Assembly: GCA_047495785.1 (NCBI GenBank)
Contig: JBLDXI010000004.1
Span: 2,232,001-2,296,000 of the forward strand
Source: Lepidodermella squamata
Taxonomy: Eukaryota > Animalia > Gastrotricha
Reading direction: 5' to 3'
DNA: 64,000 bases
Position numbers and translations under genes: made by a program. Below the pieces are notes generated by a model. It was given only the letters and a program-made list of their open reading frames with translations, was not told where the DNA came from and searched no databases. Positions 1 to 52,224 of the stretch are shown piece after piece. Position 1 is the first letter of the stretch, and the number at the start of each line of letters is the position of its first letter.

Positions 1-3000
1 GCGTATGAGTCCTGCCATCCAAGCGGGTAACTGCCACATTGGTGTAAAGAGGCTAGATTAACCAAATCAAATGCGACGAAGACGATGGCAATGTCAGATT
101 TCATGCCAGAGTTATCGATTCGATAGTCATCGATAAGTTTTGATTGATTGGTTTATCGATTTTGGCCCCTTTTGTCACCTCGGGATGGCTTTTTCACGAA
201 TGGTGATGTCTGGCGGGCTGAAAATTTGCAAATATTCAGAATCAGCATTGTCGAAAACCCCTGTACAGTCATTTGGGCCATAGGCGGCTCAGTTTTGACA
301 AAATTTACCCTTTTTCGTGAGCTTTAAAGGCCAGGCGGCTATGCTTTAAGTCCGTTTGAATGTCCATTTTACAAACGGTGATGAATTTAGGTCTAATTTT
401 TTGCAGATGTTGAGATTCAGCATTGTCGATAACCCTTGACAAATAAATTTGACATTCGTACTGGCCAGATTTCCAAAAAATGTCAATTTACGGTGAAAAA
501 AACAGCAAATTTCAAGTTTGCGCAAACTCAAGTCAAATTTTCAATGCGTATGAGTCCTGCCATCCAAGCGGGTAACTGCCACATTGGTGTAAAGAGGCTA
601 GATTAACCAAATCAAATGCGACGAAGACGATGGCAATGTCAGATTTCATGCCAGAGTTATCGATTCGATAGTCATCGATAAGTTTTGATTGATTGGTTTA
701 TCGATTTTGGCCCCTTTTGTCACCTCGGGATGGCTTTTTCACGAATGGTGATGTCTGGCGGGCTGAAAATTTGCAAATATTCAGAATCAGCATTGTCGAA
801 AACCCCTGTACAGTCATTTGGGCCATAGGCGGCTCAGTTTTGACAAAATTTACCCTTTTTCGTGAGCTTTAAAGGCCAGGCGGCTATGCTTTAAGTCCGT
901 TTGAATGTCCATTTTACAAACGGTGATGAATTTAGGTCTAATTTTTTGCAGATGTTGAGATTCAGCATTGTCGATAACCCTTGACAAATAAATTTGACAT
1001 TCGTACTAGCCAGATTTCCAAAAAATGTCAATTTACGGTGAAAAAAACAGCAAATTTCAAGTTTGCGCAAACTCAAGTCAAATTTTCAATGCGTATGAGT
1101 CCTGCCATCCAAGCGGGTAACTGCCACATTGGTGTAAAGAAGCTAGATTAACCAAATCAAATGCGACGAAGACGATGGCAATGTCAGATTTCATGCCAGA
1201 GTTATCGATTCGATAGTTATCGATAAGTTTTGATTGATTGGTTTATCGATTTTGGCCCCTTTTGTCACCTCGGGATGGCTTTTTCACGAATGGTGATGTC
1301 TGGCGGGCTGAAAATTTGCAAATATTCAGAATCAGCATTGTCGAAAACCCCTGTACAGTCATTTGGGCCATAGGCGGCTCAGTTTTGACAAAATTTACCC
1401 TTTTTCGTGAGCTTTAAAGGCCAGGCGGCTATGCTTTAAGTCCGTTTGAATGTCCATTTTACAAACGGTGATGAATTTAGGTCTAATTTTTTGCAGATGT
1501 TGAGATTCAGCATTGTCGATAACCCTTGACAAATAAATTTGACATTCGTACTGGCCAGATTTCCAAAAAATGTCAATTTACGGTGAAAAAAACAGCAAAT
1601 TTCAAGTTTGCGCAAACTCAAGTCAAATTTTCAATGCGTATGAGTCCTGCCATCCAAGCGGGTAACTGCCACATTGGTGTAAAGAGGCTAGATTAACCAA
1701 ATCAAATGCGACGAAGACGATGGCAATGTCAGATTTCATGCCAGAGTTATCGATTCGATAGTCATCGATAAGTTTTGATTGATTGGTTTATCGATTTTGG
1801 CCCCTTTTGTCACCTCGGGATGGCTTTTTCACGAATGGTGATGTCTGGCGGGCTGAAAATTTGCAAATATTCAGAATCAGCATTGTCGAAAACCCCTGTA
1901 CAGTCATTTGGGCCATAGGCGGCTCAGTTTTGACAAAATTTACCCTTTTTCGTGAGCTTTAAAGGCCAGGCGGCTATGCTTTAAGTCCGTTTGAATGTCC
2001 ATTTTACAAACGGTGATGAATTTAGGTCTAATTTTTTGCAGATGTTGAGATTCAGCATTGTCGATAACCCTTGACAAATAAATTTGACATTCGTACTAGC
2101 CAGATTTCCAAAAAATGTCAATTTACGGTGAAAAAAACAGCAAATTTCAAGTTTGCGCAAACTCAAGTCAAATTTTCAATGCGTATGAGTCCTGCCATCC
2201 AAGCGGGTAACTGCCACATTGGTGTAAAGAAGCTAGATTAACCAAATCAAATGCGACGAAGACGATGGCAATGTCAGATTTCATGCCAGAGTTATCGATT
2301 CGATAGTCATCGATAAGTTTTGATTGATTGGTTTATCGATTTTGGCCCCTTTTGTCACCTCGGGATGGCTTTTTCACGAATGGTGATGTCTGGCGGGCTG
2401 AAAATTTGCAAATATTCAGAATCAGCATTGTCGAAAACCCCTGTACAGTCATTTGGGCCATAGGCGGCTCAGTTTTGACAAAATTTACCCTTTTTCGTGA
2501 GCTTTAAAGGCCAGGCGGCTATGCTTTAAGTCCGTTTGAATGTCCATTTTACAAACGGTGATGAATTTAGGTCTAATTTTTTGCAGATGTTGAGATTCAG
2601 CATTGTCGATAACCCTTGACAAATAAATTTGACATTCGTACTGGCCAGATTTCCAAAAAATGTCAATTTACGGTGAAAAAAACAGCAAATTTCAAGTTTG
2701 CGCAAACTCAAGTCAAATTTTCAATGCGTATGAGTCCTGCCATCCAAGCGGGTAACTGCCACATTGGTGTAAAGAGGCTAGATTAACCAAATCAAATGCG
2801 ACGAAGACGATGGCAATGTCAGATTTCATGCCAGAGTTATCGATTCGATAGTCATCGATAAGTTTTGATTGATTGGTTTATCGATTTTGGCCCCTTTTGT
2901 CACCTCGGGATGGCTTTTTCACGAATGGTGATGTCTGGCGGGCTGAAAATTTGCAAATATTCAGAATCAGCATTGTCGAAAACCCCTGTACAGTCATTTG

Positions 3001-6000
3001 GGCCATAGGCGGCTCAGTTTTGACAAAATTTACCCTTTTTCGTGAGCTTTAAAGGCCAGGCGGCTATGCTTTAAGTCCGTTTGAATGTCCATTTTACAAA
3101 CGGTGATGAATTTAGGTCTAATTTTTTGCAGATGTTGAGATTCAGCATTGTCGATAACCCTTGACAAATAAATTTGACATTCGTACTGGCCAGATTTCCA
3201 AAAAATGTCAATTTACGGTGAAAAAAACAGCAAATTTCAAGTTTGCGCAAACTCAAGTCAAATTTTCAATGCGTATGAGTCCTGCCATCCAAGCGGGTAA
3301 CTGCCACATTGGTGTAAAGAGGCTAGATTAACCAAATCAAATGCGACGAAGACGATGGCAATGTCAGATTTCATGCCAGAGTTATCGATTCGATAGTCAT
3401 CGATAAGTTTTGATTGATTGGTTTATCGATTTTGGCCCCTTTTGTCACCTCGGGATGGCTTTTTCACGAATGGTGATGTCTGGCGGGCTGAAAATTTGCA
3501 AATATTCAGAATCAGCATTGTCGAAAACCCCTGTACAGTCATTTGGGCCATAGGCGGCTCAGTTTTGACAAAATTTACCCTTTTTCGTGAGCTTTAAAGG
3601 CCAGGCGGCTATGCTTTAAGTCCGTTTGAATGTCCATTTTACAAACGGTGATGAATTTAGGTCTAATTTTTTGCAGATGTTGAGATTCAGCATTGTCGAT
3701 AACCCTTGACAAATAAATTTGACATTCGTACTGGCCAGATTTCCAAAAAATGTCAATTTACGGTGAAAAAAACAGCAAATTTCAAGTTTGCGCAAACTCA
3801 AGTCAAATTTTCAATGCGTATGAGTCCTGCCATCCAAGCGGGTAACTGCCACATTGGTGTAAAGAGGCTAGATTAACCAAATCAAATGCGACGAAGACGA
3901 TGGCAATGTCAGATTTCATGCCAGAGTTATCGATTCGATAGTCATCGATAAGTTTTGATTGATTGGTTTATCGATTTTGGCCCCTTTTGTCACCTCGGGA
4001 TGGCTTTTTCACGAATGGTGATGTCTGGCGGGCTGAAAATTTGCAAATATTCAGAATCAGCATTGTCGAAAACCCCTGTACAGTCATTTGGGCCATAGGC
4101 GGCTCAGTTTTGACAAAATTTACCCTTTTTCGTGAGCTTTAAAGGCCAGGCGGCTATGCTTTAAGTCCGTTTGAATGTCCATTTTACAAACGGTGATGAA
4201 TTTAGGTCTAATTTTTTGCAGATGTTGAGATTCAGCATTGTCGATAACCCTTGACAAATAAATTTGACATTCGTACTGGCCAGATTTCCAAAAAATGTCA
4301 ATTTACGGTGAAAAAAACAGCAAATTTCAAGTTTGCGCAAACTCAAGTCAAATTTTCAATGCGTATGAGTCCTGCCATCCAAGCGGGTAACTGCCACATT
4401 GGTGTAAAGAGGCTAGATTAACCAAATCAAATGCGACGAAGACGATGGCAATGTCAGATTTCATGCCAGAGTTATCGATTCGATAGTCATCGATAAGTTT
4501 TGATTGATTGGTTTATCGATTTTGGCCCCTTTTGTCACCTCGGGATGGCTTTTTCACGAATGGTGATGTCTGGCGGGCTGAAAATTTGCAAATATTCAGA
4601 ATCAGCATTGTCGAAAACCCCTGTACAGTCATTTGGGCCATAGGCGGCTCAGTTTTGACAAAATTTACCCTTTTTCGTGAGCTTTAAAGGCCAGGCGGCT
4701 ATGCTTTAAGTCCGTTTGAATGTCCATTTTACAAACGGTGATGAATTTAGGTCTAATTTTTTGCAGATGTTGAGATTCAGCATTGTCGATAACCCTTGAC
4801 AAATAAATTTGACATTCGTACTGGCCAGATTTCCAAAAAATGTCAATTTACGGTGAAAAAAACAGCAAATTTCAAGTTTGCGCAAACTCAAGTCAAATTT
4901 TCAATGCGTATGAGTCCTGCCATCCAAGCGGGTAACTGCCACATTGGTGTAAAGAGGCTAGATTAACCAAATCAAATGCGACGAAGACGATGGCAATGTC
5001 AGATTTCATGCCAGAGTTATCGATTCGATAGTCATCGATAAGTTTTGATTGATTGGTTTATCGATTTTGGCCCCTTTTGTCACCTCGGGATGGCTTTTTC
5101 ACGAATGGTGATGTCTGGCGGGCTGAAAATTTGCAAATATTCAGAATCAGCATTGTCGAAAACCCCTGTACAGTCATTTGGGCCATAGGCGGCTCAGTTT
5201 TGACAAAATTTACCCTTTTTCGTGAGCTTTAAAGGCCAGGCGGCTATGCTTTAAGTCCGTTTGAATGTCCATTTTACAAACGGTGATGAATTTAGGTCTA
5301 ATTTTTTGCAGATGTTGAGATTCAGCATTGTCGATAACCCTTGACAAATAAATTTGACATTCGTACTGGCCAGATTTCCAAAAAATGTCAATTTACGGTG
5401 AAAAAAACAGCAAATTTCAAGTTTGCGCAAACTCAAGTCAAATTTTCAATGCGTATGAGTCCTGCCATCCAAGCGGGTAACTGCCACATTGGTGTAAAGA
5501 GGCTAGATTAACCAAATCAAATGCGACGAAGACGATGGCAATGTCAGATTTCATGCCAGAGTTATCGATTCGATAGTCATCGATAAGTTTTGATTGATTG
5601 GTTTATCGATTTTGGCCCCTTTTGTCACCTCGGGATGGCTTTTTCACGAATGGTGATGTCTGGCGGGCTGAAAATTTGCAAATATTCAGAATCAGCATTG
5701 TCGAAAACCCCTGTACAGTCATTTGGGCCATAGGCGGCTCAGTTTTGACAAAATTTACCCTTTTTCGTGAGCTTTAAAGGCCAGGCGGCTATGCTTTAAG
5801 TCCGTTTGAATGTCCATTTTACAAACGGTGATGAATTTAGGTCTAATTTTTTGCAGATGTTGAGATTCAGCATTGTCGATAACCCTTGACAAATAAATTT
5901 GACATTCGTACTGGCCAGATTTCCAAAAAATGTCAATTTACGGTGAAAAAAACAGCAAATTTCAAGTTTGCGCAAACTCAAGTCAAATTTTCAATGCGTA

Positions 6001-9000
6001 TGAGTCCTGCCATCCAAGCGGGTAACTGCCACATTGGTGTAAAGAGGCTAGATTAACCAAATCAAATGCGACGAAGACGATGGCAATGTCAGATTTCATG
6101 CCAGAGTTATCGATTCGATAGTCATCGATAAGTTTTGATTGATTGGTTTATCGATTTTGGCCCCTTTTGTCACCTCGGGATGGCTTTTTCACGAATGGTG
6201 ATGTCTGGCGGGCTGAAAATTTGCAAATATTCAGAATCAGCATTGTCGAAAACCCCTGTACAGTCATTTGGGCCATAGGCGGCTCAGTTTTGACAAAATT
6301 TACCCTTTTTCGTGAGCTTTAAAGGCCAGGCGGCTATGCTTTAAGTCCGTTTGAATGTCCATTTTACAAACGGTGATGAATTTAGGTCTAATTTTTTGCA
6401 GATGTTGAGATTCAGCATTGTCGATAACCCTTGACAAATAAATTTGACATTCGTACTGGCCAGATTTCCAAAAAATGTCAATTTACGGTGAAAAAAACAG
6501 CAAATTTCAAGTTTGCGCAAACTCAAGTCAAATTTTCAATGCGTATGAGTCCTGCCATCCAAGCGGGTAACTGCCACATTGGTGTAAAGAGGCTAGATTA
6601 ACCAAATCAAATGCGACGAAGACGATGGCAATGTCAGATTTCATGCCAGAGTTATCGATTCGATAGTCATCGATAAGTTTTGATTGATTGGTTTATCGAT
6701 TTTGGCCCCTTTTGTCACCTCGGGATGGCTTTTTCACGAATGGTGATGTCTGGCGGGCTGAAAATTTGCAAATATTCAGAATCAGCATTGTCGAAAACCC
6801 CTGTACAGTCATTTGGGCCATAGGCGGCTCAGTTTTGACAAAATTTACCCTTTTTCGTGAGCTTTAAAGGCCAGGCGGCTATGCTTTAAGTCCGTTTGAA
6901 TGTCCATTTTACAAACGGTGATGAATTTAGGTCTCATTTTTTGCAGATGTTGAGATTCAGCATTGTCGATAACCCTTGACAAATAAATTTGACATTCGTA
7001 CTGGCCAGATTTCCAAAAAATGTCAATTTACGGTGAAAAAAACAGCAAATTTCAAGTTTGCGCAAACTCAAGTCAAATTTTCAATGCGTATGAGTCCTGC
7101 CATCCAAGCGGGTAACTGCCACATTGGTGTAAAGAGGCTAGATTAACCAAATCAAATGCGACGAAGACGATGGCAATGTCAGATTTCATGCCAGAGTTAT
7201 CGATTCGATAGTCATCGATAAGTTTTGATTGATTGGTTTATCGATTTTGGCCCCTTTTGTCACCTCGGGATGGCTTTTTCACGAATGGTGATGTCTGGCG
7301 GGCTGAAAATTTGCAAATATTCAGAATCAGCATTGTCGAAAACCCCTGTACAGTCATTTGGGCCATAGGCGGCTCAGTTTTGACAAAATTTACCCTTTTT
7401 CGTGAGCTTTAAAGGCCAGGCGGCTATGCTTTAAGTCCGTTTGAATGTCCATTTTACAAACGGTGATGAATTTAGGTCTAATTTTTTGCAGATGTTGAGA
7501 TTCAGCATTGTCGATAACCCTTGACAAATAAATTTGACATTCGTACTGGCCAGATTTCCAAAAAATGTCAATTTACGGTGAAAAAAACAGCAAATTTCAA
7601 GTTTGCGCAAACTCAAGTCAAATTTTCAATGCGTATGAGTCCTGCCATCCAAGCGGGTAACTGCCACATTGGTGTAAAGAGGCTAGATTAACCAAATCAA
7701 ATGCGACGAAGACGATGGCAATGTCAGATTTCATGCCAGAGTTATCGATTCGATAGTCATCGATAAGTTTTGATTGATTGGTTTATCGATTTTGGCCCCT
7801 TTTGTCACCTCGGGATGGCTTTTTCACGAATGGTGATGTCTGGCGGGCTGAAAATTTGCAAATATTCAGAATCAGCATTGTCGAAAACCCCTGTACAGTC
7901 ATTTGGGCCATAGGCGGCTCAGTTTTGACAAAATTTACCCTTTTTCGTGAGCTTTAAAGGCCAGGCGGCTATGCTTTAAGTCCGTTTGAATGTCCATTTT
8001 ACAAACGGTGATGAATTTAGGTCTAATTTTTTGCAGATGTTGAGATTCAGCATTGTCGATAACCCTTGACAAATAAATTTGACATTCGTACTGGCCAGAT
8101 TTCCAAAAAATGTCAATTTACGGTGAAAAAAACAGCAAATTTCAAGTTTGCGCAAACTCAAGTCAAATTTTCAATGCGTATGAGTCCTGCCATCCAAGCG
8201 GGTAACTGCCACATTGGTGTAAAGAGGCTAGATTAACCAAATCAAATGCGACGAAGACGATGGCAATGTCAGATTTCATGCCAGAGTTATCGATTCGATA
8301 GTCATCGATAAGTTTTGATTGATTGGTTTATCGATTTTGGCCCCTTTTGTCACCTCGGGATGGCTTTTTCACGAATGGTGATGTCTGGCGGGCTGAAAAT
8401 TTGCAAATATTCAGAATCAGCATTGTCGAAAACCCCTGTACAGTCATTTGGGCCATAGGCGGCTCAGTTTTGACAAAATTTACCCTTTTTCGTGAGCTTT
8501 AAAGGCCAGGCGGCTATGCTTTAAGTCCGTTTGAATGTCCATTTTACAAACGGTGATGAATTTAGGTCTAATTTTTTGCAGATGTTGAGATTCAGCATTG
8601 TCGATAACCCTTGACAAATAAATTTGACATTCGTACTGGCCAGATTTCCAAAAAATGTCAATTTACGGTGAAAAAAACAGCAAATTTCAAGTTTGCGCAA
8701 ACTCAAGTCAAATTTTCAATGCGTATGAGTCCTGCCATCCAAGCGGGTAACTGCCACATTGGTGTAAAGAGGCTAGATTAACCAAATCAAATGCGACGAA
8801 GACGATGGCAATGTCAGATTTCATGCCAGAGTTATCGATTCGATAGTCATCGATAAGTTTTGATTGATTGGTTTATCGATTTTGGCCCCTTTTGTCACCT
8901 CGGGATGGCTTTTTCACGAATGGTGATGTCTGGCGGGCTGAAAATTTGCAAATATTCAGAATCAGCATTGTCGAAAACCCCTGTACAGTCATTTGGGCCA

Positions 9001-11992
9001 TAGGCGGCTCAGTTTTGACAAAATTTACCCTTTTTCGTGAGCTTTAAAGGCCAGGCGGCTATGCTTTAAGTCCGTTTGAATGTCCATTTTACAAACGGTG
9101 ATGAATTTAGGTCTAATTTTTTGCAGATGTTGAGATTCAGCATTGTCGATAACCCTTGACAAATAAATTTGACATTCGTACTGGCCAGATTTCCAAAAAA
9201 TGTCAATTTACGGTGAAAAAAACAGCAAATTTCAAGTTTGCGCAAACTCAAGTCAAATTTTCAATGCGTATGAGTCCTGCCATCCAAGCGGGTAACTGCC
9301 ACATTGGTGTAAAGAGGCTAGATTAACCAAATCAAATGCGACGAAGACGATGGCAATGTCAGATTTCATGCCAGAGTTATCGATTCGATAGTCATCGATA
9401 AGTTTTGATTGATTGGTTTATCGATTTTGGCCCCTTTTGTCACCTCGGGATGGCTTTTTCACGAATGGTGATGTCTGGCGGGCTGAAAATTTGCAAATAT
9501 TCAGAATCAGCATTGTCGAAAACCCCTGTACAGTCATTTGGGCCATAGGCGGCTCAGTTTTGACAAAATTTACCCTTTTTCGTGAGCTTTAAAGGCCAGG
9601 CGGCTATGCTTTAAGTCCGTTTGAATGTCCATTTTACAAACGGTGATGAATTTAGGTCTAATTTTTTGCAGATGTTGAGATTCAGCATTGTCGATAACCC
9701 TTGACAAATAAATTTGACATTCGTACTGGCCAGATTTCCAAAAAATGTCAATTTACGGTGAAAAAAACAGCAAATTTCAAGTTTGCGCAAACTCAAGTCA
9801 AATTTTCAATGCGTATGAGTCCTGCCATCCAAGCGGGTAACTGCCACATTGGTGTAAAGAGGCTAGATTAACCAAATCAAATGCGACGAAGACGATGGCA
9901 ATGTCAGATTTCATGCCAGAGTTATCGATTCGATAGTCATCGATAAGTTTTGATTGATTGGTTTATCGATTTTGGCCCCTTTTGTCACCTCGGGATGGCT
10001 TTTTCACGAATGGTGATGTCTGGCGGGCTGAAAATTTGCAAATATTCAGAATCAGCATTGTCGAAAACCCCTGTACAGTCATTTGGGCCATAGGCGGCTC
10101 AGTTTTGACAAAATTTACCCTTTTTCGTGAGCTTTAAAGGCCAGGCGGCTATGCTTTAAGTCCGTTTGAATGTCCATTTTACAAACGGTGATGAATTTAG
10201 GTCTAATTTTTTGCAGATGTTGAGATTCAGCATTGTCGATAACCCTTGACAAATAAATTTGACATTCGTACTGGCCAGATTTCCAAAAAATGTCAATTTA
10301 CGGTGAAAAAAACAGCAAATTTCAAGTTTGCGCAAACTCAAGTCAAATTTTCAATGCGTATGAGTCCTGCCATCCAAGCGGGTAACTGCCACATTGGTGT
10401 AAAGAGGCTAGATTAACCAAATCAAATGCGACGAAGACGATGGCAATGTCAGATTTCATGCCAGAGTTATCGATTCGATAGTCATCGATAAGTTTTGATT
10501 GATTGGTTTATCGATTTTGGCCCCTTTTGTCACCTCGGGATGGCTTTTTCACGAATGGTGATGTCTGGCGGGCTGAAAATTTGCAAATATTCAGAATCAG
10601 CATTGTCGAAAACCCCTGTACAGTCATTTGGGCCATAGGCGGCTCAGTTTTGACAAAATTTACCCTTTTTCGTGAGCTTTAAAGGCCAGGCGGCTATGCT
10701 TTAAGTCCGTTTGAATGTCCATTTTACAAACGGTGATGAATTTAGGTCTAATTTTTTGCAGATGTTGAGATTCAGCATTGTCGATAACCCTTGACAAATA
10801 AATTTGACATTCGTACTGGCCAGATTTCCAAAAAATGTCAATTTACGGTGAAAAAAACAGCAAATTTCAAGTTTGCGCAAACTCAAGTCAAATTTTCAAT
10901 GCGTATGAGTCCTGCCATCCAAGCGGGTAACTGCCACATTGGTGTAAAGAGGCTAGATTAACCAAATCAAATGCGACGAAGACGATGGCAATGTCAGATT
11001 TCATGCCAGAGTTATCGATTCGATAGTCATCGATAAGTTTTGATTGATTGGTTTATCGATTTTGGCCCCTTTTGTCACCTCGGGATGGCTTTTTCACGAA
11101 TGGTGATGTCTGGCGGGCTGAAAATTTGCAAATATTCAGAATCAGCATTGTCGAAAACCCCTGTACAGTCATTTGGGCCATAGGCGGCTCAGTTTTGACA
11201 AAATTTACCCTTTTTCGTGAGCTTTAAAGGCCAGGCGGCTATGCTTTAAGTCCGTTTGAATGTCCATTTTACAAACGGTGATGAATTTAGGTCTAATTTT
11301 TTGCAGATGTTGAGATTCAGCATTGTCGATAACCCTTGACAAATAAATTTGACATTCGTACTGGCCAGATTTCCAAAAAATGTCAATTTACGGTGAAAAA
11401 AACAGCAAATTTCAAGTTTGCGCAAACTCAAGTCAAATTTTCAATGCGTATGAGTCCTGCCATCCAAGCGGGTAACTGCCACATTGGTGTAAAGAGGCTA
11501 GATTAACCAAATCAAATGCGACGAAGACGATGGCAATGTCAGATTTCATGCCAGAGTTATCGATTCGATAGTCATCGATAAGTTTTGATTGATTGGTTTA
11601 TCGATTTTGGCCCCTTTTGTCACCTCGGGATGGCTTTTTCACGAATGGTGATGTCTGGCGGGCTGAAAATTTGCAAATATTCAGAATCAGCATTGTCGAA
11701 AACCCCTGTACAGTCATTTGGGCCATAGGCGGCTCAGTTTTGACAAAATTTACCCTTTTTCGTGAGCTTTAAAGGCCAGGCGGCTATGCTTTAAGTCCGT
11801 TTGAATGTCCATTTTACAAACGGTGATGAATTTAGGTCTAATTTTTTGCAGATGTTGAGATTCAGCATTGTCGATAACCCTTGACAAATAAATTTGACAT
11901 TCGTACTGGCCAGATTTCCAAAAAATGTCAATTTACGGTGAAAAAAACAGCAAATTTCAAGTTTGCGCAAACTCAAGTCAAATTTTCAATGC
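1..11992 (+). repeat. Satellite block 1, forward orientation (22 monomers)
   Basis: Monomer starts at 1+545k up to 11991, where GCGTATG is replaced by GCTGATTCTG. Confidence 0.97.
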
Positions 11993-14900: not shown

Positions 14901-17900
14901 TTAATCTAGCCTCTTTACACCAATGTGGCAGTTACCCGCTTGGATGGCAGGACTCATACGCATTGAAAATTTGACTTGAGTTTGCGCAAACTTGAAATTT
15001 GCTGTTTTTTTCAACACATCTCGTGAGAGTTTGGAAATCTGGCCAGTACGAATGTCAAATTTATTTGTCAAGGGTTATCGACAATGCTGAATCTCAACAT
15101 CTGCAAAAAATTAGACCTAAATTCATCACCGTTTGTAAAATGGACATTCAAACGGACTTAAAGCATAGCCGCCTGGCCTTTAAAGCTCACGAAAAAGGGT
15201 AAATTTTGTCAAAACTGAGCCGCCTATGGCCCAAATGACTGTACAGGGGTTTTCGACAATGCTGATTCTGAATATTTGCAAATTTTCAGCCCGCCAGACA
15301 TCACCATTCGTGAAAAAGCCATCCCGAGGTGACAAAAGGGGCCAAAATCGATAAACCAATCAATCAAAACTTATCGATGACTATCGAATCGATAACTCTG
15401 GCATGAAATCTGACATTGCCATCGTCTTCGTCGCATTTGATTTGGTTAATCTAGCCTCTTTACACCAATGTGGCAGTTACCCGCTTGGATGGCAGGACTC
15501 ATACGCATTGAAAATTTGACTTGAGTTTGCGCAAACTTGAAATTTGCTGTTTTTTTCACCGTAAATTGACATTTTTTGGAAATCTGGCCAGTACGAATGT
15601 CAAATTTATTTGTCAAGGGTTATCGACAATGCTGAATCTCAACATCTGCAAAAAATTAGACCTAAATTCATCACCGTTTGTAAAATGGACATTCAAACGG
15701 ACTTAAAGCATAGCCGCCTGGCCTTTAAAGCTCACGAAAAAGGGTAAATTTTGTCAAAACTGAGCCGCCTATGGCCCAAATGACTGTACAGGGGTTTTCG
15801 ACAATGCTGATTCTGAATATTTGCAAATTTTCAGCCCGCCAGACATCACCATTCGTGAAAAAGCCATCCCGAGGTGACAAAAGGGGCCAAAATCGATAAA
15901 CCAATCAATCAAAACTTATCGATGACTATCGAATCGATAACTCTGGCATGAAATCTGACATTGCCATCGTCTTCGTCGCATTTGATTTGGTTAATCTAGC
16001 CTCTTTACACCAATGTGGCAGTTACCCGCTTGGATGGCAGGACTCATACGCATTGAAAATTTGACTTGAGTTTGCGCAAACTTGAAATTTGCTGTTTTTT
16101 TCACCGTAAATTGACATTTTTTGGAAATCTGGCCAGTACGAATGTCAAATTTATTTGTCAAGGGTTATCGACAATGCTGAATCTCAACATCTGCAAAAAA
16201 TTAGACCTAAATTCATCACCGTTTGTAAAATGGACATTCAAACGGACTTAAAGCATAGCCGCCTGGCCTTTAAAGCTCACGAAAAAGGGTAAATTTTGTC
16301 AAAACTGAGCCGCCTATGGCCCAAATGACTGTACAGGGGTTTTCGACAATGCTGATTCTGAATATTTGCAAATTTTCAGCCCGCCAGACATCACCATTCG
16401 TGAAAAAGCCATCCCGAGGTGACAAAAGGGGCCAAAATCGATAAACCAATCAATCAAAACTTATCGATGACTATCGAATCGATAACTCTGGCATGAAATC
16501 TGACATTGCCATCGTCTTCGTCGCATTTGATTTGGTTAATCTAGCCTCTTTACACCAATGTGGCAGTTACCCGCTTGGATGGCAGGACTCATACGCATTG
16601 AAAATTTGACTTGAGTTTGCGCAAACTTGAAATTTGCTGTTTTTTTCACCGTAAATTGACATTTTTTGGAAATCTGGCCAGTACGAATGTCAAATTTATT
16701 TGTCAAGGGTTATCGACAATGCTGAATCTCAACATCTGCAAAAAATTAGACCTAAATTCATCACCGTTTGTAAAATGGACATTCAAACGGACTTAAAGCA
16801 TAGCCGCCTGGCCTTTAAAGCTCACGAAAAAGGGTAAATTTTGTCAAAACTGAGCCGCCTATGGCCCAAATGACTGTACAGGGGTTTTCGACAATGCTGA
16901 TTCTGAATATTTGCAAATTTTCAGCCCGCCAGACATCACCATTCGTGAAAAAGCCATCCCGAGGTGACAAAAGGGGCCAAAATCGATAAACCAATCAATC
17001 AAAACTTATCGATGACTATCGAATCGATAACTCTGGCATGAAATCTGACATTGCCATCGTCTTCGTCGCATTTGATTTGGTTAATCTAGCCTCTTTACAC
17101 CAATGTGGCAGTTACCCGCTTGGATGGCAGGACTCATACGCATTGAAAATTTGACTTGAGTTTGCGCAAACTTGAAATTTGCTGTTTTTTTCACCGTAAA
17201 TTGACATTTTTTGGAAATCTGGCCAGTACGAATGTCAAATTTATTTGTCAAGGGTTATCGACAATGCTGAATCTCAACATCTGCAAAAAATTAGACCTAA
17301 ATTCATCACCGTTTGTAAAATGGACATTCAAACGGACTTAAAGCATAGCCGCCTGGCCTTTAAAGCTCACGAAAAAGGGTAAATTTTGTCAAAACTGAGC
17401 CGCCTATGGCCCAAATGACTGTACAGGGGTTTTCGACAATGCTGATTCTGAATATTTGCAAATTTTCAGCCCGCCAGACATCACCATTCGTGAAAAAGCC
17501 ATCCCGAGGTGACAAAAGGGGCCAAAATCGATAAACCAATCAATCAAAACTTATCGATGACTATCGAATCGATAACTCTGGCATGAAATCTGACATTGCC
17601 ATCGTCTTCGTCGCATTTGATTTGGTTAATCTAGCCTCTTTACACCAATGTGGCAGTTACCCGCTTGGATGGCAGGACTCATACGCATTGAAAATTTGAC
17701 TTGAGTTTGCGCAAACTTGAAATTTGCTGTTTTTTTCACCGTAAATTGACATTTTTTGGAAATCTGGCCAGTACGAATGTCAAATTTATTTGTCAAGGGT
17801 TATCGACAATGCTGAATCTCAACATCTGCAAAAAATTAGACCTAAATTCATCACCGTTTGTAAAATGGACATTCAAACGGACTTAAAGCATAGCCGCCTG

Positions 17901-20900
17901 GCCTTTAAAGCTCACGAAAAAGGGTAAATTTTGTCAAAACTGAGCCGCCTATGGCCCAAATGACTGTACAGGGGTTTTCGACAATGCTGATTCTGAATAT
18001 TTGCAAATTTTCAGCCCGCCAGACATCACCATTCGTGAAAAAGCCATCCCGAGGTGACAAAAGGGGCCAAAATCGATAAACCAATCAATCAAAACTTATC
18101 GATGACTATCGAATCGATAACTCTGGCATGAAATCTGACATTGCCATCGTCTTCGTCGCATTTGATTTGGTTAATCTAGCCTCTTTACACCAATGTGGCA
18201 GTTACCCGCTTGGATGGCAGGACTCATACGCATTGAAAATTTGACTTGAGTTTGCGCAAACTTGAAATTTGCTGTTTTTTTCACCGTAAATTGACATTTT
18301 TTGGAAATCTGGCCAGTACGAATGTCAAATTTATTTGTCAAGGGTTATCGACAATGCTGAATCTCAACATCTGCAAAAAATTAGACCTAAATTCATCACC
18401 GTTTGTAAAATGGACATTCAAACGGACTTAAAGCATAGCCGCCTGGCCTTTAAAGCTCACGAAAAAGGGTAAATTTTGTCAAAACTGAGCCGCCTATGGC
18501 CCAAATGACTGTACAGGGGTTTTCGACAATGCTGATTCTGAATATTTGCAAATTTTCAGCCCGCCAGACATCACCATTCGTGAAAAAGCCATCCCGAGGT
18601 GACAAAAGGGGCCAAAATCGATAAACCAATCAATCAAAACTTATCGATGACTATCGAATCGATAACTCTGGCATGAAATCTGACATTGCCATCGTCTTCG
18701 TCGCATTTGATTTGGTTAATCTAGCCTCTTTACACCAATGTGGCAGTTACCCGCTTGGATGGCAGGACTCATACGCATTGAAAATTTGACTTGAGTTTGC
18801 GCAAACTTGAAATTTGCTGTTTTTTTCACCGTAAATTGACATTTTTTGGAAATCTGGCCAGTACGAATGTCAAATTTATTTGTCAAGGGTTATCGACAAT
18901 GCTGAATCTCAACATCTGCAAAAAATTAGACCTAAATTCATCACCGTTTGTAAAATGGACATTCAAACGGACTTAAAGCATAGCCGCCTGGCCTTTAAAG
19001 CTCACGAAAAAGGGTAAATTTTGTCAAAACTGAGCCGCCTATGGCCCAAATGACTGTACAGGGGTTTTCGACAATGCTGATTCTGAATATTTGCAAATTT
19101 TCAGCCCGCCAGACATCACCATTCGTGAAAAAGCCATCCCGAGGTGACAAAAGGGGCCAAAATCGATAAACCAATCAATCAAAACTTATCGATGACTATC
19201 GAATCGATAACTCTGGCATGAAATCTGACATTGCCATCGTCTTCGTCGCATTTGATTTGGTTAATCTAGCCTCTTTACACCAATGTGGCAGTTACCCGCT
19301 TGGATGGCAGGACTCATACGCATTGAAAATTTGACTTGAGTTTGCGCAAACTTGAAATTTGCTGTTTTTTTCACCGTAAATTGACATTTTTTGGAAATCT
19401 GGCCAGTACGAATGTCAAATTTATTTGTCAAGGGTTATCGACAATGCTGAATCTCAACATCTGCAAAAAATTAGACCTAAATTCATCACCGTTTGTAAAA
19501 TGGACATTCAAACGGACTTAAAGCATAGCCGCCTGGCCTTTAAAGCTCACGAAAAAGGGTAAATTTTGTCAAAACTGAGCCGCCTATGGCCCAAATGACT
19601 GTACAGGGGTTTTCGACAATGCTGATTCTGAATATTTGCAAATTTTCAGCCCGCCAGACATCACCATTCGTGAAAAAGCCATCCCGAGGTGACAAAAGGG
19701 GCCAAAATCGATAAACCAATCAATCAAAACTTATCGATGACTATCGAATCGATAACTCTGGCATGAAATCTGACATTGCCATCGTCTTCGTCGCATTTGA
19801 TTTGGTTAATCTAGCCTCTTTACACCAATGTGGCAGTTACCCGCTTGGATGGCAGGACTCATACGCATTGAAAATTTGACTTGAGTTTGCGCAAACTTGA
19901 AATTTGCTGTTTTTTTCACCGTAAATTGACATTTTTTGGAAATCTGGCCAGTACGAATGTCAAATTTATTTGTCAAGGGTTATCGACAATGCTGAATCTC
20001 AACATCTGCAAAAAATTAGACCTAAATTCATCACCGTTTGTAAAATGGACATTCAAACGGACTTAAAGCATAGCCGCCTGGCCTTTAAAGCTCACGAAAA
20101 AGGGTAAATTTTGTCAAAACTGAGCCGCCTATGGCCCAAATGACTGTACAGGGGTTTTCGACAATGCTGATTCTGAATATTTGCAAATTTTCAGCCCGCC
20201 AGACATCACCATTCGTGAAAAAGCCATCCCGAGGTGACAAAAGGGGCCAAAATCGATAAACCAATCAATCAAAACTTATCGATGACTATCGAATCGATAA
20301 CTCTGGCATGAAATCTGACATTGCCATCGTCTTCGTCGCATTTGATTTGGTTAATCTAGCCTCTTTACACCAATGTGGCAGTTACCCGCTTGGATGGCAG
20401 GACTCATACGCATTGAAAATTTGACTTGAGTTTGCGCAAACTTGAAATTTGCTGTTTTTTTCACCGTAAATTGACATTTTTTGGAAATCTGGCCAGTACG
20501 AATGTCAAATTTATTTGTCAAGGGTTATCGACAATGCTGAATCTCAACATCTGCAAAAAATTAGACCTAAATTCATCACCGTTTGTAAAATGGACATTCA
20601 AACGGACTTAAAGCATAGCCGCCTGGCCTTTAAAGCTCACGAAAAAGGGTAAATTTTGTCAAAACTGAGCCGCCTATGGCCCAAATGACTGTACAGGGGT
20701 TTTCGACAATGCTGATTCTGAATATTTGCAAATTTTCAGCCCGCCAGACATCACCATTCGTGAAAAAGCCATCCCGAGGTGACAAAAGGGGCCAAAATCG
20801 ATAAACCAATCAATCAAAACTTATCGATGACTATCGAATCGATAACTCTGGCATGAAATCTGACATTGCCATCGTCTTCGTCGCATTTGATTTGGTTAAT

Positions 20901-21041
20901 CTAGCCTCTTTACACCAATGTGGCAGTTACCCGCTTGGATGGCAGGACTCATACGCATTGAAAATTTGACTTGAGTTTGCGCAAACTTGAAATTTGCTGT
21001 TTTTTTCACCGTAAATTGACATTTTTTGGAAATCTGGCCAG
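11987..21041 (-). repeat. Satellite block 2, inverted orientation (~16.6 monomers)
   Basis: Reverse complement of the monomer; the repeated 61-aa ORF switches to the + strand (12251-20611). Confidence 0.97.
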
Positions 21042-24000
21042 ATTTCCAAAAAATGTCAATTTACGGTGAAAAAAACAGCAAATTTCAAGTTTGCGCAAAC
21101 TCAAGTCAAATTTTCAATGCGTATGAGTCCTGCCATCCAAGCGGGTAACTGCCACATTGGTGTAAAGAGGCTAGATTAACCAAATCAAATGCGACGAAGA
21201 CGATGGCAATGTCAGATTTCATGCCAGAGTTATCGATTCGATAGTCATCGATAAGTTTTGATTGATTGGTTTATCGATTTTGGCCCCTTTTGTCACCTCG
21301 GGATGGCTTTTTCACGAATGGTGATGTCTGGCGGGCTGAAAATTTGCAAATATTCAGAATCAGCATTGTCGAAAACCCCTGTACAGTCATTTGGGCCATA
21401 GGCGGCTCAGTTTTGACAAAATTTACCCTTTTTCGTGAGCTTTAAAGGCCAGGCGGCTATGCTTTAAGTCCGTTTGAATGTCCATTTTACAAACGGTGAT
21501 GAATTTAGGTCTAATTTTTTGCAGATGTTGAGATTCAGCATTGTCGATAACCCTTGACAAATAAATTTGACATTCGTACTGGCCAGATTTCCAAAAAATG
21601 TCAATTTACGGTGAAAAAAACAGCAAATTTCAAGTTTGCGCAAACTCAAGTCAAATTTTCAATGCGTATGAGTCCTGCCATCCAAGCGGGTAACTGCCAC
21701 ATTGGTGTAAAGAGGCTAGATTAACCAAATCAAATGCGACGAAGACGATGGCAATGTCAGATTTCATGCCAGAGTTATCGATTCGATAGTCATCGATAAG
21801 TTTTGATTGATTGGTTTATCGATTTTGGCCCCTTTTGTCACCTCGGGATGGCTTTTTCACGAATGGTGATGTCTGGCGGGCTGAAAATTTGCAAATATTC
21901 AGAATCAGCATTGTCGAAAACCCCTGTACAGTCATTTGGGCCATAGGCGGCTCAGTTTTGACAAAATTTACCCTTTTTCGTGAGCTTTAAAGGCCAGGCG
22001 GCTATGCTTTAAGTCCGTTTGAATGTCCATTTTACAAACGGTGATGAATTTAGGTCTAATTTTTTGCAGATGTTGAGATTCAGCATTGTCGATAACCCTT
22101 GACAAATAAATTTGACATTCGTACTGGCCAGATTTCCAAAAAATGTCAATTTACGGTGAAAAAAACAGCAAATTTCAAGTTTGCGCAAACTCAAGTCAAA
22201 TTTTCAATGCGTATGAGTCCTGCCATCCAAGCGGGTAACTGCCACATTGGTGTAAAGAGGCTAGATTAACCAAATCAAATGCGACGAAGACGATGGCAAT
22301 GTCAGATTTCATGCCAGAGTTATCGATTCGATAGTCATCGATAAGTTTTGATTGATTGGTTTATCGATTTTGGCCCCTTTTGTCACCTCGGGATGGCTTT
22401 TTCACGAATGGTGATGTCTGGCGGGCTGAAAATTTGCAAATATTCAGAATCAGCATTGTCGAAAACCCCTGTACAGTCATTTGGGCCATAGGCGGCTCAG
22501 TTTTGACAAAATTTACCCTTTTTCGTGAGCTTTAAAGGCCAGGCGGCTATGCTTTAAGTCCGTTTGAATGTCCATTTTACAAACGGTGATGAATTTAGGT
22601 CTAATTTTTTGCAGATGTTGAGATTCAGCATTGTCGATAACCCTTGACAAATAAATTTGACATTCGTACTGGCCAGATTTCCAAAAAATGTCAATTTACG
22701 GTGAAAAAAACAGCAAATTTCAAGTTTGCGCAAACTCAAGTCAAATTTTCAATGCGTATGAGTCCTGCCATCCAAGCGGGTAACTGCCACATTGGTGTAA
22801 AGAGGCTAGATTAACCAAATCAAATGCGACGAAGACGATGGCAATGTCAGATTTCATGCCAGAGTTATCGATTCGATAGTCATCGATAAGTTTTGATTGA
22901 TTGGTTTATCGATTTTGGCCCCTTTTGTCACCTCGGGATGGCTTTTTCACGAATGGTGATGTCTGGCGGGCTGAAAATTTGCAAATATTCAGAATCAGCA
23001 TTGTCGAAAACCCCTGTACAGTCATTTGGGCCATAGGCGGCTCAGTTTTGACAAAATTTACCCTTTTTCGTGAGCTTTAAAGGCCAGGCGGCTATGCTTT
23101 AAGTCCGTTTGAATGTCCATTTTACAAACGGTGATGAATTTAGGTCTAATTTTTTGCAGATGTTGAGATTCAGCATTGTCGATAACCCTTGACAAATAAA
23201 TTTGACATTCGTACTGGCCAGATTTCCAAAAAATGTCAATTTACGGTGAAAAAAACAGCAAATTTCAAGTTTGCGCAAACTCAAGTCAAATTTTCAATGC
23301 GTATGAGTCCTGCCATCCAAGCGGGTAACTGCCACATTGGTGTAAAGAGGCTAGATTAACCAAATCAAATGCGACGAAGACGATGGCAATGTCAGATTTC
23401 ATGCCAGAGTTATCGATTCGATAGTCATCGATAAGTTTTGATTGATTGGTTTATCGATTTTGGCCCCTTTTGTCACCTCGGGATGGCTTTTTCACGAATG
23501 GTGATGTCTGGCGGGCTGAAAATTTGCAAATATTCAGAATCAGCATTGTCGAAAACCCCTGTACAGTCATTTGGGCCATAGGCGGCTCAGTTTTGACAAA
23601 ATTTACCCTTTTTCGTGAGCTTTAAAGGCCAGGCGGCTATGCTTTAAGTCCGTTTGAATGTCCATTTTACAAACGGTGATGAATTTAGGTCTAATTTTTT
23701 GCAGATGTTGAGATTCAGCATTGTCGATAACCCTTGACAAATAAATTTGACATTCGTACTGGCCAGATTTCCAAAAAATGTCAATTTACGGTGAAAAAAA
23801 CAGCAAATTTCAAGTTTGCGCAAACTCAAGTCAAATTTTCAATGCGTATGAGTCCTGCCATCCAAGCGGGTAACTGCCACATTGGTGTAAAGAGGCTAGA
23901 TTAACCAAATCAAATGCGACGAAGACGATGGCAATGTCAGATTTCATGCCAGAGTTATCGATTCGATAGTCATCGATAAGTTTTGATTGATTGGTTTATC

Positions 24001-26832
24001 GATTTTGGCCCCTTTTGTCACCTCGGGATGGCTTTTTCACGAATGGTGATGTCTGGCGGGCTGAAAATTTGCAAATATTCAGAATCAGCATTGTCGAAAA
24101 CCCCTGTACAGTCATTTGGGCCATAGGCGGCTCAGTTTTGACAAAATTTACCCTTTTTCGTGAGCTTTAAAGGCCAGGCGGCTATGCTTTAAGTCCGTTT
24201 GAATGTCCATTTTACAAACGGTGATGAATTTAGGTCTAATTTTTTGCAGATGTTGAGATTCAGCATTGTCGATAACCCTTGACAAATAAATTTGACATTC
24301 GTACTGGCCAGATTTCCAAAAAATGTCAATTTACGGTGAAAAAAACAGCAAATTTCAAGTTTGCGCAAACTCAAGTCAAATTTTCAATGCGTATGAGTCC
24401 TGCCATCCAAGCGGGTAACTGCCACATTGGTGTAAAGAGGCTAGATTAACCAAATCAAATGCGACGAAGACGATGGCAATGTCAGATTTCATGCCAGAGT
24501 TATCGATTCGATAGTCATCGATAAGTTTTGATTGATTGGTTTATCGATTTTGGCCCCTTTTGTCACCTCGGGATGGCTTTTTCACGAATGGTGATGTCTG
24601 GCGGGCTGAAAATTTGCAAATATTCAGAATCAGCATTGTCGAAAACCCCTGTACAGTCATTTGGGCCATAGGCGGCTCAGTTTTGACAAAATTTACCCTT
24701 TTTCGTGAGCTTTAAAGGCCAGGCGGCTATGCTTTAAGTCCGTTTGAATGTCCATTTTACAAACGGTGATGAATTTAGGTCTAATTTTTTGCAGATGTTG
24801 AGATTCAGCATTGTCGATAACCCTTGACAAATAAATTTGACATTCGTACTGGCCAGATTTCCAAAAAATGTCAATTTACGGTGAAAAAAACAGCAAATTT
24901 CAAGTTTGCGCAAACTCAAGTCAAATTTTCAATGCGTATGAGTCCTGCCATCCAAGCGGGTAACTGCCACATTGGTGTAAAGAGGCTAGATTAACCAAAT
25001 CAAATGCGACGAAGACGATGGCAATGTCAGATTTCATGCCAGAGTTATCGATTCGATAGTCATCGATAAGTTTTGATTGATTGGTTTATCGATTTTGGCC
25101 CCTTTTGTCACCTCGGGATGGCTTTTTCACGAATGGTGATGTCTGGCGGGCTGAAAATTTGCAAATATTCAGAATCAGCATTGTCGAAAACCCCTGTACA
25201 GTCATTTGGGCCATAGGCGGCTCAGTTTTGACAAAATTTACCCTTTTTCGTGAGCTTTAAAGGCCAGGCGGCTATGCTTTAAGTCCGTTTGAATGTCCAT
25301 TTTACAAACGGTGATGAATTTAGGTCTAATTTTTTGCAGATGTTGAGATTCAGCATTGTCGATAACCCTTGACAAATAAATTTGACATTCGTACTGGCCA
25401 GATTTCCAAAAAATGTCAATTTACGGTGAAAAAAACAGCAAATTTCAAGTTTGCGCAAACTCAAGTCAAATTTTCAATGCGTATGAGTCCTGCCATCCAA
25501 GCGGGTAACTGCCACATTGGTGTAAAGAGGCTAGATTAACCAAATCAAATGCGACGAAGACGATGGCAATGTCAGATTTCATGCCAGAGTTATCGATTCG
25601 ATAGTCATCGATAAGTTTTGATTGATTGGTTTATCGATTTTGGCCCCTTTTGTCACCTCGGGATGGCTTTTTCACGAATGGTGATGTCTGGCGGGCTGAA
25701 AATTTGCAAATATTCAGAATCAGCATTGTCGAAAACCCCTGTACAGTCATTTGGGCCATAGGCGGCTCAGTTTTGACAAAATTTACCCTTTTTCGTGAGC
25801 TTTAAAGGCCAGGCGGCTATGCTTTAAGTCCGTTTGAATGTCCATTTTACAAACGGTGATGAATTTAGGTCTAATTTTTTGCAGATGTTGAGATTCAGCA
25901 TTGTCGATAACCCTTGACAAATAAATTTGACATTCGTACTGGCCAGATTTCCAAAAAATGTCAATTTACGGTGAAAAAAACAGCAAATTTCAAGTTTGCG
26001 CAAACTCAAGTCAAATTTTCAATGCGTATGAGTCCTGCCATCCAAGCGGGTAACTGCCACATTGGTGTAAAGAGGCTAGATTAACCAAATCAAATGCGAC
26101 GAAGACGATGGCAATGTCAGATTTCATGCCAGAGTTATCGATTCGATAGTCATCGATAAGTTTTGATTGATTGGTTTATCGATTTTGGCCCCTTTTGTCA
26201 CCTCGGGATGGCTTTTTCACGAATGGTGATGTCTGGCGGGCTGAAAATTTGCAAATATTCAGAATCAGCATTGTCGAAAACCCCTGTACAGTCATTTGGG
26301 CCATAGGCGGCTCAGTTTTGACAAAATTTACCCTTTTTCGTGAGCTTTAAAGGCCAGGCGGCTATGCTTTAAGTCCGTTTGAATGTCCATTTTACAAACG
26401 GTGATGAATTTAGGTCTAATTTTTTGCAGATGTTGAGATTCAGCATTGTCGATAACCCTTGACAAATAAATTTGACATTCGTACTGGCCAGATTTCCAAA
26501 AAATGTCAATTTACGGTGAAAAAAACAGCAAATTTCAAGTTTGCGCAAACTCAAGTCAAATTTTCAATGCGTATGAGTCCTGCCATCCAAGCGGGTAACT
26601 GCCACATTGGTGTAAAGAGGCTAGATTAACCAAATCAAATGCGACGAAGACGATGGCAATGTCAGATTTCATGCCAGAGTTATCGATTCGATAGTCATCG
26701 ATAAGTTTTGATTGATTGGTTTATCGATTTTGGCCCCTTTTGTCACCTCGGGATGGCTTTTTCACGAATGGTGATGTCTGGCGGGCTGAAAATTTGCAAA
26801 TATTCAGAATCAGCATTGTCGAAAACCCCTGT
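21034..26832 (+). repeat. Satellite block 3, forward orientation (~10.6 monomers), out of phase with block 1
   Basis: Forward monomer resumes at CTGGCCAG 21034-21041; monomer start at 21119; exact match ends at GAAAACCCCTGT 26832. Confidence 0.97.
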
Positions 26833-27167
26833 GTTCTCAATTTGGCCATAGGCGCGTGACAGAATTTTGACAGAATTTTATTATTACTGCGGTTTGATAT
26901 GTTTACTATAATAATAATAATAAATGTACGCAAATCGCGAGACATTTAACTGACTATAACTAATTAATCGAGTCTCGTATTGCAAATATATTTACATATT
27001 CTTGCTCGTCGCAATGAAGCGGTCATTTTGACACCAGTCTCGAGGCGATATTCGACAAAATAACTTTTTTTATTTTTTATTAAAGACTATACGCACACTA
27101 GCTACATTTCAGCACTGCGGTGACGTTATCACGATGAAGCAATTGATACAATATCACATAAATATCC

Positions 27168-28103
27168 TTGGTTCTCAAGCGCCGAAAACGAGAGCAATCC
27201 AATTGGCTTAACTCAAATAAGTTTCCTTTAGATAATGACCATATTCGATCGGAGACTGTTACGCCAAGTCACAGCCCTCTGATAAAATCGTGTAAAATTT
27301 TGGATATTTTTCCTCTCTACTTTAAGGAAGATGATTATTGTGTCATCTCTCCATTTTTACTCTTTACAAATCTTTACACAGCTATAGATTGTGACGACGG
27401 ACAGTTTCAGATACTCAATGCTAATCTCAACAAGTGCCATCGAAAACATGAAACAATACTATGCCCCTGGGAAGCATATACGAGTCGAACTATGGTCAAC
27501 TGGATGCATCCGACGAACGAAACAAGTCAACTCAACATATGCAAAGCAACAGCCAACTTCTGCGATAATCTACCACCATGGATACAGCTCAACAACACCA
27601 CTTTCTGGCTAGCAAAAGCGACAATGGTTTCGCACGTAAGTCATACAAGCTTTGCACTCAAATTGCTATCAGCCACACTGATTACTCTGGCGACAGGCAC
27701 AATAGGATACGGTAATCACGAAATGCTACAAGTCGAAGGTGACGTCAATATCACCAACGGCAGTTTTAGCGCCTCAACCTTTGTTATCATCGGGAAAAAC
27801 ATGTTAATGCAGCCTAATTCTTCAAAAATTGAGCTGCCTAGACACACCATGGTCAAATCGTGTCAAATTTTTGAAACTACACCTGAAATGACCAATTCCG
27901 GGATAACTTGGTGGGGAGCGAGTATCATTGTTGTGGTCATCCTTAGCTCAATTATGATATTTGTGCTCCTAAAGTGCCTAACGAATATTCAGATGGGGTG
28001 TGAAAGGCAACACCGAAGCCATGACAACATTTACGAACCAATGACGCGCGCCAAAAAGGTGTTTCGACGAAAACAGCCAAAAACCATATGCAGCTCTATA
28101 TAA
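27168..28103 (+). pseudogene. 5'-truncated envelope-like type I membrane glycoprotein (possibly errantivirus/baculovirus F-like Env)
   Basis: 311-codon ORF starting at TTG with no signal peptide; Cys-rich ectodomain (LNKCHRKHETILCP); N-glycosylation sequons NET, NNT/NTT, NIT, NGS, NSS; TM helix WWGASIIVVVILSSIMIFVLL; cytoplasmic YEPM and basic tail; lies just upstream of PPT/LTR. Confidence 0.7.
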
Positions 28104-51500: not shown

Positions 51501-51820
51501 CGTTTTGTAGTTGAAGCAGCTTCGGGCGGCCTAAAATCAACTTTAGGATCATCAATTAGGGGAAAATGAGAGCCCTCACGCCGGATTTGCAACTCGCCAA
51601 CGAATTCAGCTTGAGCCCGAGCTTTTTGGAATTCGGTTAAAAATAGAAAAGAAAATCTGACGTTGAATAAAGGGCTTACCTGAACGTCATCGAGGAATGA
51701 GCAATTCTCTTTACAACCTGCGAAAGAATCATTCAAACGGGAGAAACACCGCTTGAATTCCTGTGAATAGGCTGATGCTGCTAGGCTCAAGATGAGAAAG
51801 ATGCGTATTATGTCAGGCAT
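48535..51820 (-). CDS. Multi-exon secreted Cys-rich-repeat protein with one C-terminal C-type-lectin-like domain
   Basis: ATG 51820, signal peptide MPDIIRIFLILSLAASAYSQ, donor GTAAG at 51679; Cys-rich exons (RCIPRNLGC, PATVCDQNGERTCIPIYGSCP, PAALCSTSGSMVCRNTCP); CTLD exons 49286-49037 (ACKTDGGRLATF...VGLI..F.W) and 48672-48599; TAG acceptor followed by TGA at 48537-48535; AATAAA near 48450. Internal exon boundaries are approximate. Confidence 0.8.
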
Positions 51821-52150: not shown

Positions 52151-52224
52151 TAAAAAATAATTATTTGATAGATAAAAAATAATTATTTGATAGATAAAAA
52201 ATAATTATTTGATAGATAAAAAAT
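52151..52224. repeat. 22-bp tandem repeat, ~3.4 copies
   Basis: TAAAAAATAATTATTTGATAGA x3 plus a partial copy. Confidence 0.9.

Follow-up and report, generated by a model that had tools for sequence, protein, structure and literature searches.

Inverted segments and fold-back junctions have been described in several systems. In yeast, triplications of SUL1 and GAP1 generated by ODIRA (inverted-repeat amplification that depends on an origin) have a forward/inverted/forward order and two non-reciprocal fold-back junctions at short inverted repeats (PMC4689423, PMC10766183, PMC11790251), and leading-to-lagging template switching supplies the same-sense pairing partner (PMC10766183). Two successive template switches also account for the inverted middle of the duplication-inverted triplication-duplication (DUP-TRP/INV-DUP) rearrangements and of small inverted triplications (PMC11293582; PMC13334657); the latter have a median microhomology of 6 bp and were proposed to result from palindromic 3' ends or flaps invading the opposite strand (PMC13334657). 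The fold-back inverted duplications and sister-chromatid fusions of breakage-fusion-bridge cycles carry short-homology palindromic junctions at a broken or stalled end (PMC3907307; PMC3834830). Finally, chimeras of whole-genome amplification and fold-back reads show overlaps of 5-8 nt, offsets of 250-300 nt or zero and a preference for palindromes and inverted repeats (PMC9984789; PMC6218980; PMC13265396; PMC12870357; PMC10908179). We analyzed a 64,000-bp stretch of the genome of the gastrotrich Lepidodermella squamata (hereafter the window; assembly GCA_047495785.1, contig JBLDXI010000004.1, positions 2,232,001 to 2,296,000), the first 26,832 bp of which are occupied by a 545-bp satellite that switches orientation at two sites, junction 1 (J1) and junction 2 (J2). 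In our preferred reading, to which we give a probability of about 0.45, the forward/inverted/forward layout is real and goes back to a pair of strand switches that inverted microhomology guided and that belong to the replicative template-switch/fold-back class.

The array resembles each of these systems in part. It shares with ODIRA products the order of the blocks, a pair of non-reciprocal fold-backs on short inverted repeats, the proposed pairing of a nascent strand with a same-sense template and, at J1, a spacing of the arms in the range of an Okazaki gap; it differs from them in that the event lies inside a homogeneous tandem array, that J2 is an uninterrupted 8-bp palindrome and that no variants are mirrored. 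With DUP-TRP/INV-DUP rearrangements and small inverted triplications it has in common an inverted middle attributable to two successive template switches, but the inverted block spans 9 kb here compared to roughly 160 bp for small inverted triplications and, for the human disorders, tens to hundreds of kb, the substrate is a satellite and there are no long inverted low-copy repeats. The short-homology palindromic junction recalls breakage-fusion-bridge events; these are terminal, entail distal loss and usually have an asymmetric centre, whereas the right flank of the array is intact up to position 64000. A breakage-fusion-bridge product does not fit: as the mirror of the last block and its flank, it predicts reverse-complemented flank left of position 15243, where only pure satellite is present. 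The overlaps, offsets and inverted-repeat or palindromic motifs of the two junctions are also those of amplification chimeras, which are normally single-molecule and removed by assemblers, whereas two junctions are present here in a megabase-scale contig. If the junctions are real, the layout is a further example of an already known kind of strand-switch structure.

A homogeneous 545-bp satellite in three orientation blocks

A k-mer phase walk, in which the window was compared with the first monomer and its reverse complement, showed that a 545-bp tandem unit fills positions 1-26832 and amounts to 49.2 copies. This period dominates the recurrences of 20-mers (n = 24,844 at a distance of 545), and identity at lag 545 reaches 99.88%, compared to about 25-33% at neighbouring lags. 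Tandem Repeats Finder missed the array for the sole reason that its maximum period is 500. Exactly three orientation blocks were found and no further switch: a forward block (1-11992, + strand; 22.0 copies, register 0) that continues past the window start, an inverted block (11993-21037, - strand; 9,045 bp, 16.6 copies) and a second forward block (21038-26832, + strand; 5,795 bp, 10.6 copies), the last base of which is monomer position 264. The signs of both GC and AT skew flip at the two block borders. The initial annotation had described a 545-bp array with this block structure, together with the monomer coordinates of the junctions, and the phase walk reproduced this description to the base.

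Seven variant events in all were detected across the 49.2 copies. Six are substitutions at 1008, 1141, 1218, 2098, 2231 and 6935 on the + strand, which are the sole differences in the forward block; those at 1218 and 6935 are single and non-recurring, and the other four repeat at a two-monomer period (1008/2098 and 1141/2231). The latter affect monomer positions 463 and 51 (window 1008-2231) and recur at 1,090 bp, that is, two monomers; they mark a recent unequal exchange in which a dimer was duplicated. The seventh event is a same-length replacement of 16 bp at 15014-15029, in one inverted monomer (forward positions 478-493), where 11 of the 16 bases differ; apart from this patch the inverted block matches the consensus, and the second forward block is free of variants. 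The patch sits 3.0 kb from J1 and 6.0 kb from J2. A micro-inversion was ruled out as its source, as it is a same-length replacement the templates of which are absent from the monomer and from the window, and a by-eye comparison with the mirror-image flank position gave no match. The patch may be a scar of templated repair or else a small third switch. Since neighbouring structural markers of the array are never separated by more than 6 kb, its layout can be anchored by long reads of ordinary length.

The array has the properties of a satellite: its units lie head to tail over many kb and are non-coding, the longest open frame in a trimer of the monomer being only 59-64 codons. A 36-bp direct subrepeat is the only internal structure of the monomer, in which no nucleosome-sized sub-period was found. 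A search of the monomer against Rfam gave no match, exact-protein look-ups of the open reading frames (ORFs) of the monomer and of one flank ORF matched no record, and metagenome scans with 22-24-mers of the monomer were blank. The array is very young and homogeneous.

Both orientation switches lie on inverted microhomology

At J1, the forward-to-reverse switch (11987-11992), the sequence follows the forward register exactly up to 11992 (monomer position 2) and already follows the reverse register exactly from 11987 (position 250) onwards. The overlap between them is a 6-nt inverted microhomology, CAATGC, which corresponds to the inverted-repeat pair 542-2/245-250 of the monomer (forward positions 542-545, 1 and 2 versus the reverse complement of 245-250). 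Monomer position 2 is thus linked to position 244-250 read in reverse, with an offset between the arms of 243 nt ahead or 297 nt behind. A microhomology of at least 6 nt is available in just 0.36% of all possible forward/reverse joins (P = 0.0036).

J2, the reverse-to-forward fold-back (21034-21041), lies on a native 8-bp palindrome of the monomer, CTGGCCAG, at monomer positions 461-468. The reverse register runs to 21041 and the forward register starts at 21034, so that both share the 8 nt of the motif. J2 is therefore a perfect palindrome without spacer, centred at 21037/21038, the arms of which stay identical up to the point where the right one exits the array, over at least 5,795 bp. Palindromes with arms of at least 4 nt occur at 5 of the 545 possible centres in the monomer (P = 0.009). 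Among the inverted-repeat pairs of at least 8 bp in the monomer (n = 15), 5 are palindromes; a symmetric J2 is consequently expected in 20-33% of opposite-orientation joins that use at least 8 nt of microhomology, and a hairpin is not needed. As the placement of both J1 and J2 is improbable by chance, both joins were guided by base pairing.

The initial annotation had further stated that the two junctions are not reciprocal, and this holds. J1 has the phase 2|244-250 and J2 the phase 461-468|461-468, while a junction reciprocal to J1 would link position 251 with position 3 in reverse orientation.

A further boundary has the same property. The end of the array against the unique flank lies exactly at position 264/265 of the monomer, where its native palindrome CTGT|ACAG has its centre (P about 0.01). 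This second type of boundary cannot be a chimera and also falls on a palindrome centre, which counts in favour of our preferred reading.

Fold-backs at native palindromes in a public sequencing run

One public run holding this genome (2024) is stored as k=31 contigs, with a library type that is not on record. The unique flank is present in this run (0.75 of sampled words), as are 2 of the 3 words sampled from a 60-base stretch across J2. In a comparison with the sequence at J1 +/- 250 bp, the graph proved to be broken up into 112 short contigs, of which 8 were listed. Word depth of the satellite is about 8,000-8,500 in the main contigs versus 3-74 in variant contigs, a contrast indicating that the homogeneity of the satellite extends genome-wide and to the read level. 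The ultra-homogeneity reported in the initial annotation is thus borne out both by this depth contrast and by the lag identity in the window.

Six loose ends were identified in this comparison. By script, five of the six proved to be exact fold-backs at palindromes native to the monomer, with an extension of 15 nt beyond the centre in every case. This is exactly the extension that a k=31 graph gives at true fold-back words. The palindrome CTTTAAAG (centre 325) is folded back in the forward-to-reverse polarity, and CTGGCCAG (centre 464) and a 14-bp palindrome (centre 521) are each folded back in both polarities. The reverse-to-forward form at centre 464 is J2 letter for letter, the match consisting of 11 diagnostic letters, the palindrome and then matched sequence. 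Five fold-back forms at three palindromes are therefore present within 250 bp of monomer, and 4 of the 5 are not in the window. The suggestion that switch points elsewhere in the genome would be non-random with respect to the dyads of the monomer is in agreement with these fold-backs at centres 325, 464 and 521. Among the 8 of 112 contigs listed, no fold-back was seen at the 10-bp palindrome of centre 228 or at any 6-bp palindrome. The sixth loose end is a contig, at window position 12081, that exits the satellite at forward position 156 into 255 nt that are not in the window; it marks either a further boundary of an array or an insertion within the satellite at some other place in the genome. 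The satellite is absent from a second run of the same study, made from another species.

Strand pairing and proposed mechanism

The satellite had been suspected to expand by template switching at its own dyads. This idea fits in so far as both junctions lie on inverted microhomology or on a native dyad; the monomer is not enriched in dyads. Its palindrome enrichment relative to dinucleotide shuffles was not significant (P = 0.06-0.12), which limits the notion of expansion through own dyads, and it contains no inverted repeat longer than 14 bp. DNA folding did not favour self-pairing of a lone 3' end carrying the 8-14-bp palindromes, and intramolecular snap-back of a single 3' end at these motifs was rejected on that ground. 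As a lone 3' end does not fold on itself, it must have paired with a second, same-sense strand. In the cell, this partner would be the lagging-strand template or the sister chromatid; in the tube, a strand that had been displaced or a different fragment would take its place.

In the mechanism that we propose, a 3' end with forward sequence ending in CAATGC would pair at J1 with the GCATTG of a same-sense strand about 0.25-0.3 kb away and would then be extended backwards. The switch at J2 would start from a 3' end whose last bases are the self-complementary CTGGCCAG; this end would pair with the same motif on a like strand, either the lagging-strand template or the sister chromatid, and would be extended forward again. 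By analogy with the described systems, such a mechanism is best read as belonging to the class that includes ODIRA, fork stalling and template switching/microhomology-mediated break-induced replication (FoSTeS/MMBIR) and small inverted triplications. We infer a germline timing, a replicative rather than a break-repair origin, and either one event or two. When all readings in which the junctions are real are taken together, the odds that they are real are somewhat better than even.

Should they be real, the array would be an unusually clean case in which both switch points have been kept to the base thanks to its youth. A satellite would have been re-oriented, and probably enlarged, by strand switching at ordinary inverted motifs of 6-8 bp, which would offer a concrete and testable route for the origin of orientation switches in tandem arrays. 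Recurrence of such events would suggest a genome-wide fold-back pathway in this animal. Should the junctions be artefacts, the palindromes of this assembly would require validation at the level of reads before any biological use, ultra-homogeneous arrays being the place where chimeric reads slip through.

Weighing of the alternative explanations

A number of points weigh against the template-switch reading. A perfect palindrome of at least 11.6 kb without spacer, such as J2, is expected to be unstable in vivo. No mirrored variants were found across J1 or J2, the substitution at 6935 and the patch at 15014-15029 having no mirror partner, and the variants are too few to be informative. The evidence from the public run consists of k=31 contigs, not raw reads, and possibly stems from the assembly's own data; it bears on J2 and not on J1, the unitig of which would be 54 nt, below the shortest contig listed. 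At a depth of ~8,000x, molecules with a frequency of 0.05% pass the count threshold of 2 and enter the graph, and contigs at error level (depth 3.5-4.4) were kept. Central asymmetry is usual among natural fold-back junctions (PMC3834830), and J2 is symmetric. Lastly, the overlap (6 nt) and offset (243/297 nt) of J1 match the profile of the inverted chimeras produced by multiple displacement amplification (MDA; PMC9984789).

A possible, if somewhat doubtful, alternative is that the true array is all forward and that J1 and J2 were made in the tube at self-complementary motifs, chimeric long reads being threaded into the contig. Such chimeras could come from whole-genome or polymerase chain reaction (PCR) amplification of a low-input sample or from end-repair fill-in, through polymerase strand switching or like-strand pairing, and would have been accepted by the assembly because an array with 100% identity offers no contradicting overlaps. 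MDA inverted chimeras have overlaps of 5-8 nt (peak 7) and distances peaking at 250-300 nt (PMC9984789), with which both J1 and the 8 nt of J2 agree; the wider profile (overlap of 5-8 nt, distance below 10 kb, peaks near 80 and 250-300 nt) is likewise that of the junctions, and as it also fits template switching in vivo it does not discriminate between the two. The lack of a spacer and the perfect symmetry of J2, and an inverted block (9 kb) below the typical length of long reads, are as expected from chimeras. Amplified samples of microscopic animals abound in palindromic reads (PMC13265396, PMC6218980), chimeras form specifically at palindromes and inverted repeats in short-read preparations (PMC10908179), which would explain fold-back words of both polarities at 8,000x, and fold-back reads can tangle assembly graphs (PMC12870357). 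Fold-back reads make up about 0.55-0.6% of Oxford Nanopore Technologies (ONT) genomic libraries (PMC12870357). Other points tell against chimeras. Unamplified high-fidelity (HiFi) data contain virtually no fold-back reads (PMC12870357). The fold-backs that ONT reads owe to un-split strands or missed adapters fall at the ends of molecules, away from palindromes native to the sequence (P = 0.009). A junction present in a single read is discarded by modern assemblers, two artefacts 9 kb apart would both have needed to survive, and MDA data seldom give assembly pieces on the megabase scale. Stronger pairing is expected of the 10-bp palindrome at centre 228 than of CTTTAAAG, yet among the contigs listed fold-back words were seen at CTTTAAAG and not at centre 228. 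The genuine end of the array likewise lies on a dyad centre.

The five fold-back forms at three palindromes, taken with the array boundary on a dyad centre, suggest a broader version of the template-switch reading: the satellite would switch strand recurrently in vivo at its stronger palindromes, in both polarities, and a snap-back/template-switch pathway would build and reshape tandem arrays genome-wide. We consider this unlikely; were it correct, the pathway would be unusually active or unusually tolerated in this animal. Distinctly improbable in our view is a real layout produced by two-ended break repair, in which 9 kb of the array were excised or broken out and then sealed in again the other way round, or a free fragment derived from the array or from extrachromosomal circular DNA was captured, both ends being sealed by microhomology-mediated end joining with a loss at the target of about 0.46 kb plus any whole monomers. 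Microhomologies of 6 and 8 nt are typical of alternative end joining, a symmetric join without a hairpin has the 20-33% frequency given above, and the lengths and phases of the blocks are compatible with an insertion plus a deletion; such repair nevertheless needs two independent microhomology joins in addition to the deletion, and leaves unexplained why the public run contains only palindromic fold-backs with zero spacer and, in the region examined, no joins at equally long non-palindromic inverted repeats. A strict ODIRA event, with an origin inside the array, a strand switch at both forks and re-integration of an inverted-dimer circle by homologous recombination, is a sub-case of the template-switch reading, so that its probability, which we hold to be very low, is contained in that of the latter and not added to it. 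It predicts both the forward/reverse/forward order and two fold-back junctions of opposite polarity at short interrupted inverted repeats, as found for the 6-bp arms 542-2/245-250 of J1 and, in an uninterrupted variant that departs from the typical interrupted repeats, for J2; the spacing of the J1 arms, roughly 0.3 kb, is within the size of an Okazaki gap (PMC10766183). With 5,795 bp, the last block does not reach the 9,045 bp of the inverted one, but block lengths are uninformative in a homogeneous array, and in-register re-integration anywhere lifts the rule of equal copy length. The array is not known to contain an origin, however, its homogeneity leaves threefold dosage and equality of copy length without a definition, and the variants at 6935 and 15014-15029 are unmirrored. 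There is virtually no chance that a single reciprocal inversion took place by recombination between inverted repeats: the existence of an inverted block is the sole point in its favour, it is refuted by the phases of the two junctions, and the inverted repeats of the monomer are at most 14 bp long.

Right end of the array and flanking sequence

Beyond the last complete register of the satellite, a monomer remnant is present at 26833-26878 (+ strand), in which 42 bp corresponding to positions 265-306 are in register at ~79% identity; unrelated AT-rich unique flank follows. The alignment score of this remnant is 37, versus a maximum of 29 for shuffled sequences. An origin of the satellite from the adjoining unique sequence was rejected, the 9 kb of flank containing this 42-bp remnant only.

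An open frame of 311 codons with a C-terminal transmembrane segment adjoins the array (27168-28103, + strand). In a protein atlas it gave only weak leads, to fusion glycoproteins of viral or transposon type (scores 0.90-0.92, low recognition), and a Pfam search gave no hit; an origin as an envelope-like relic of an endogenous retroelement is possible. Further to the right, a frame of 194 aa (39826-40410, - strand) resembles the C-terminal zinc-knuckle region of the ORF2 proteins of non-long-terminal-repeat (non-LTR) retrotransposons. It reached an atlas score of 0.97 with a cluster named 'PO24 protein', zf-RVT being present in related clusters, and is a fragment of a long interspersed nuclear element (LINE).

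The remainder of the window contains other repeats. A diverged tandem duplication (49015-51828 and 61519-63758; 76-98% identity, spacing of about 11.7-12.5 kb) carries C-type-lectin-like exons in a gene segment. Between its two copies lie a 22-bp AT-rich tandem repeat (52141-52224, 3.8 copies) and a pair of inverted repeats at 52442-52771 (71 nt, 94% complementary, 188-nt spacer) that looks like a small miniature inverted-repeat transposable element (MITE).

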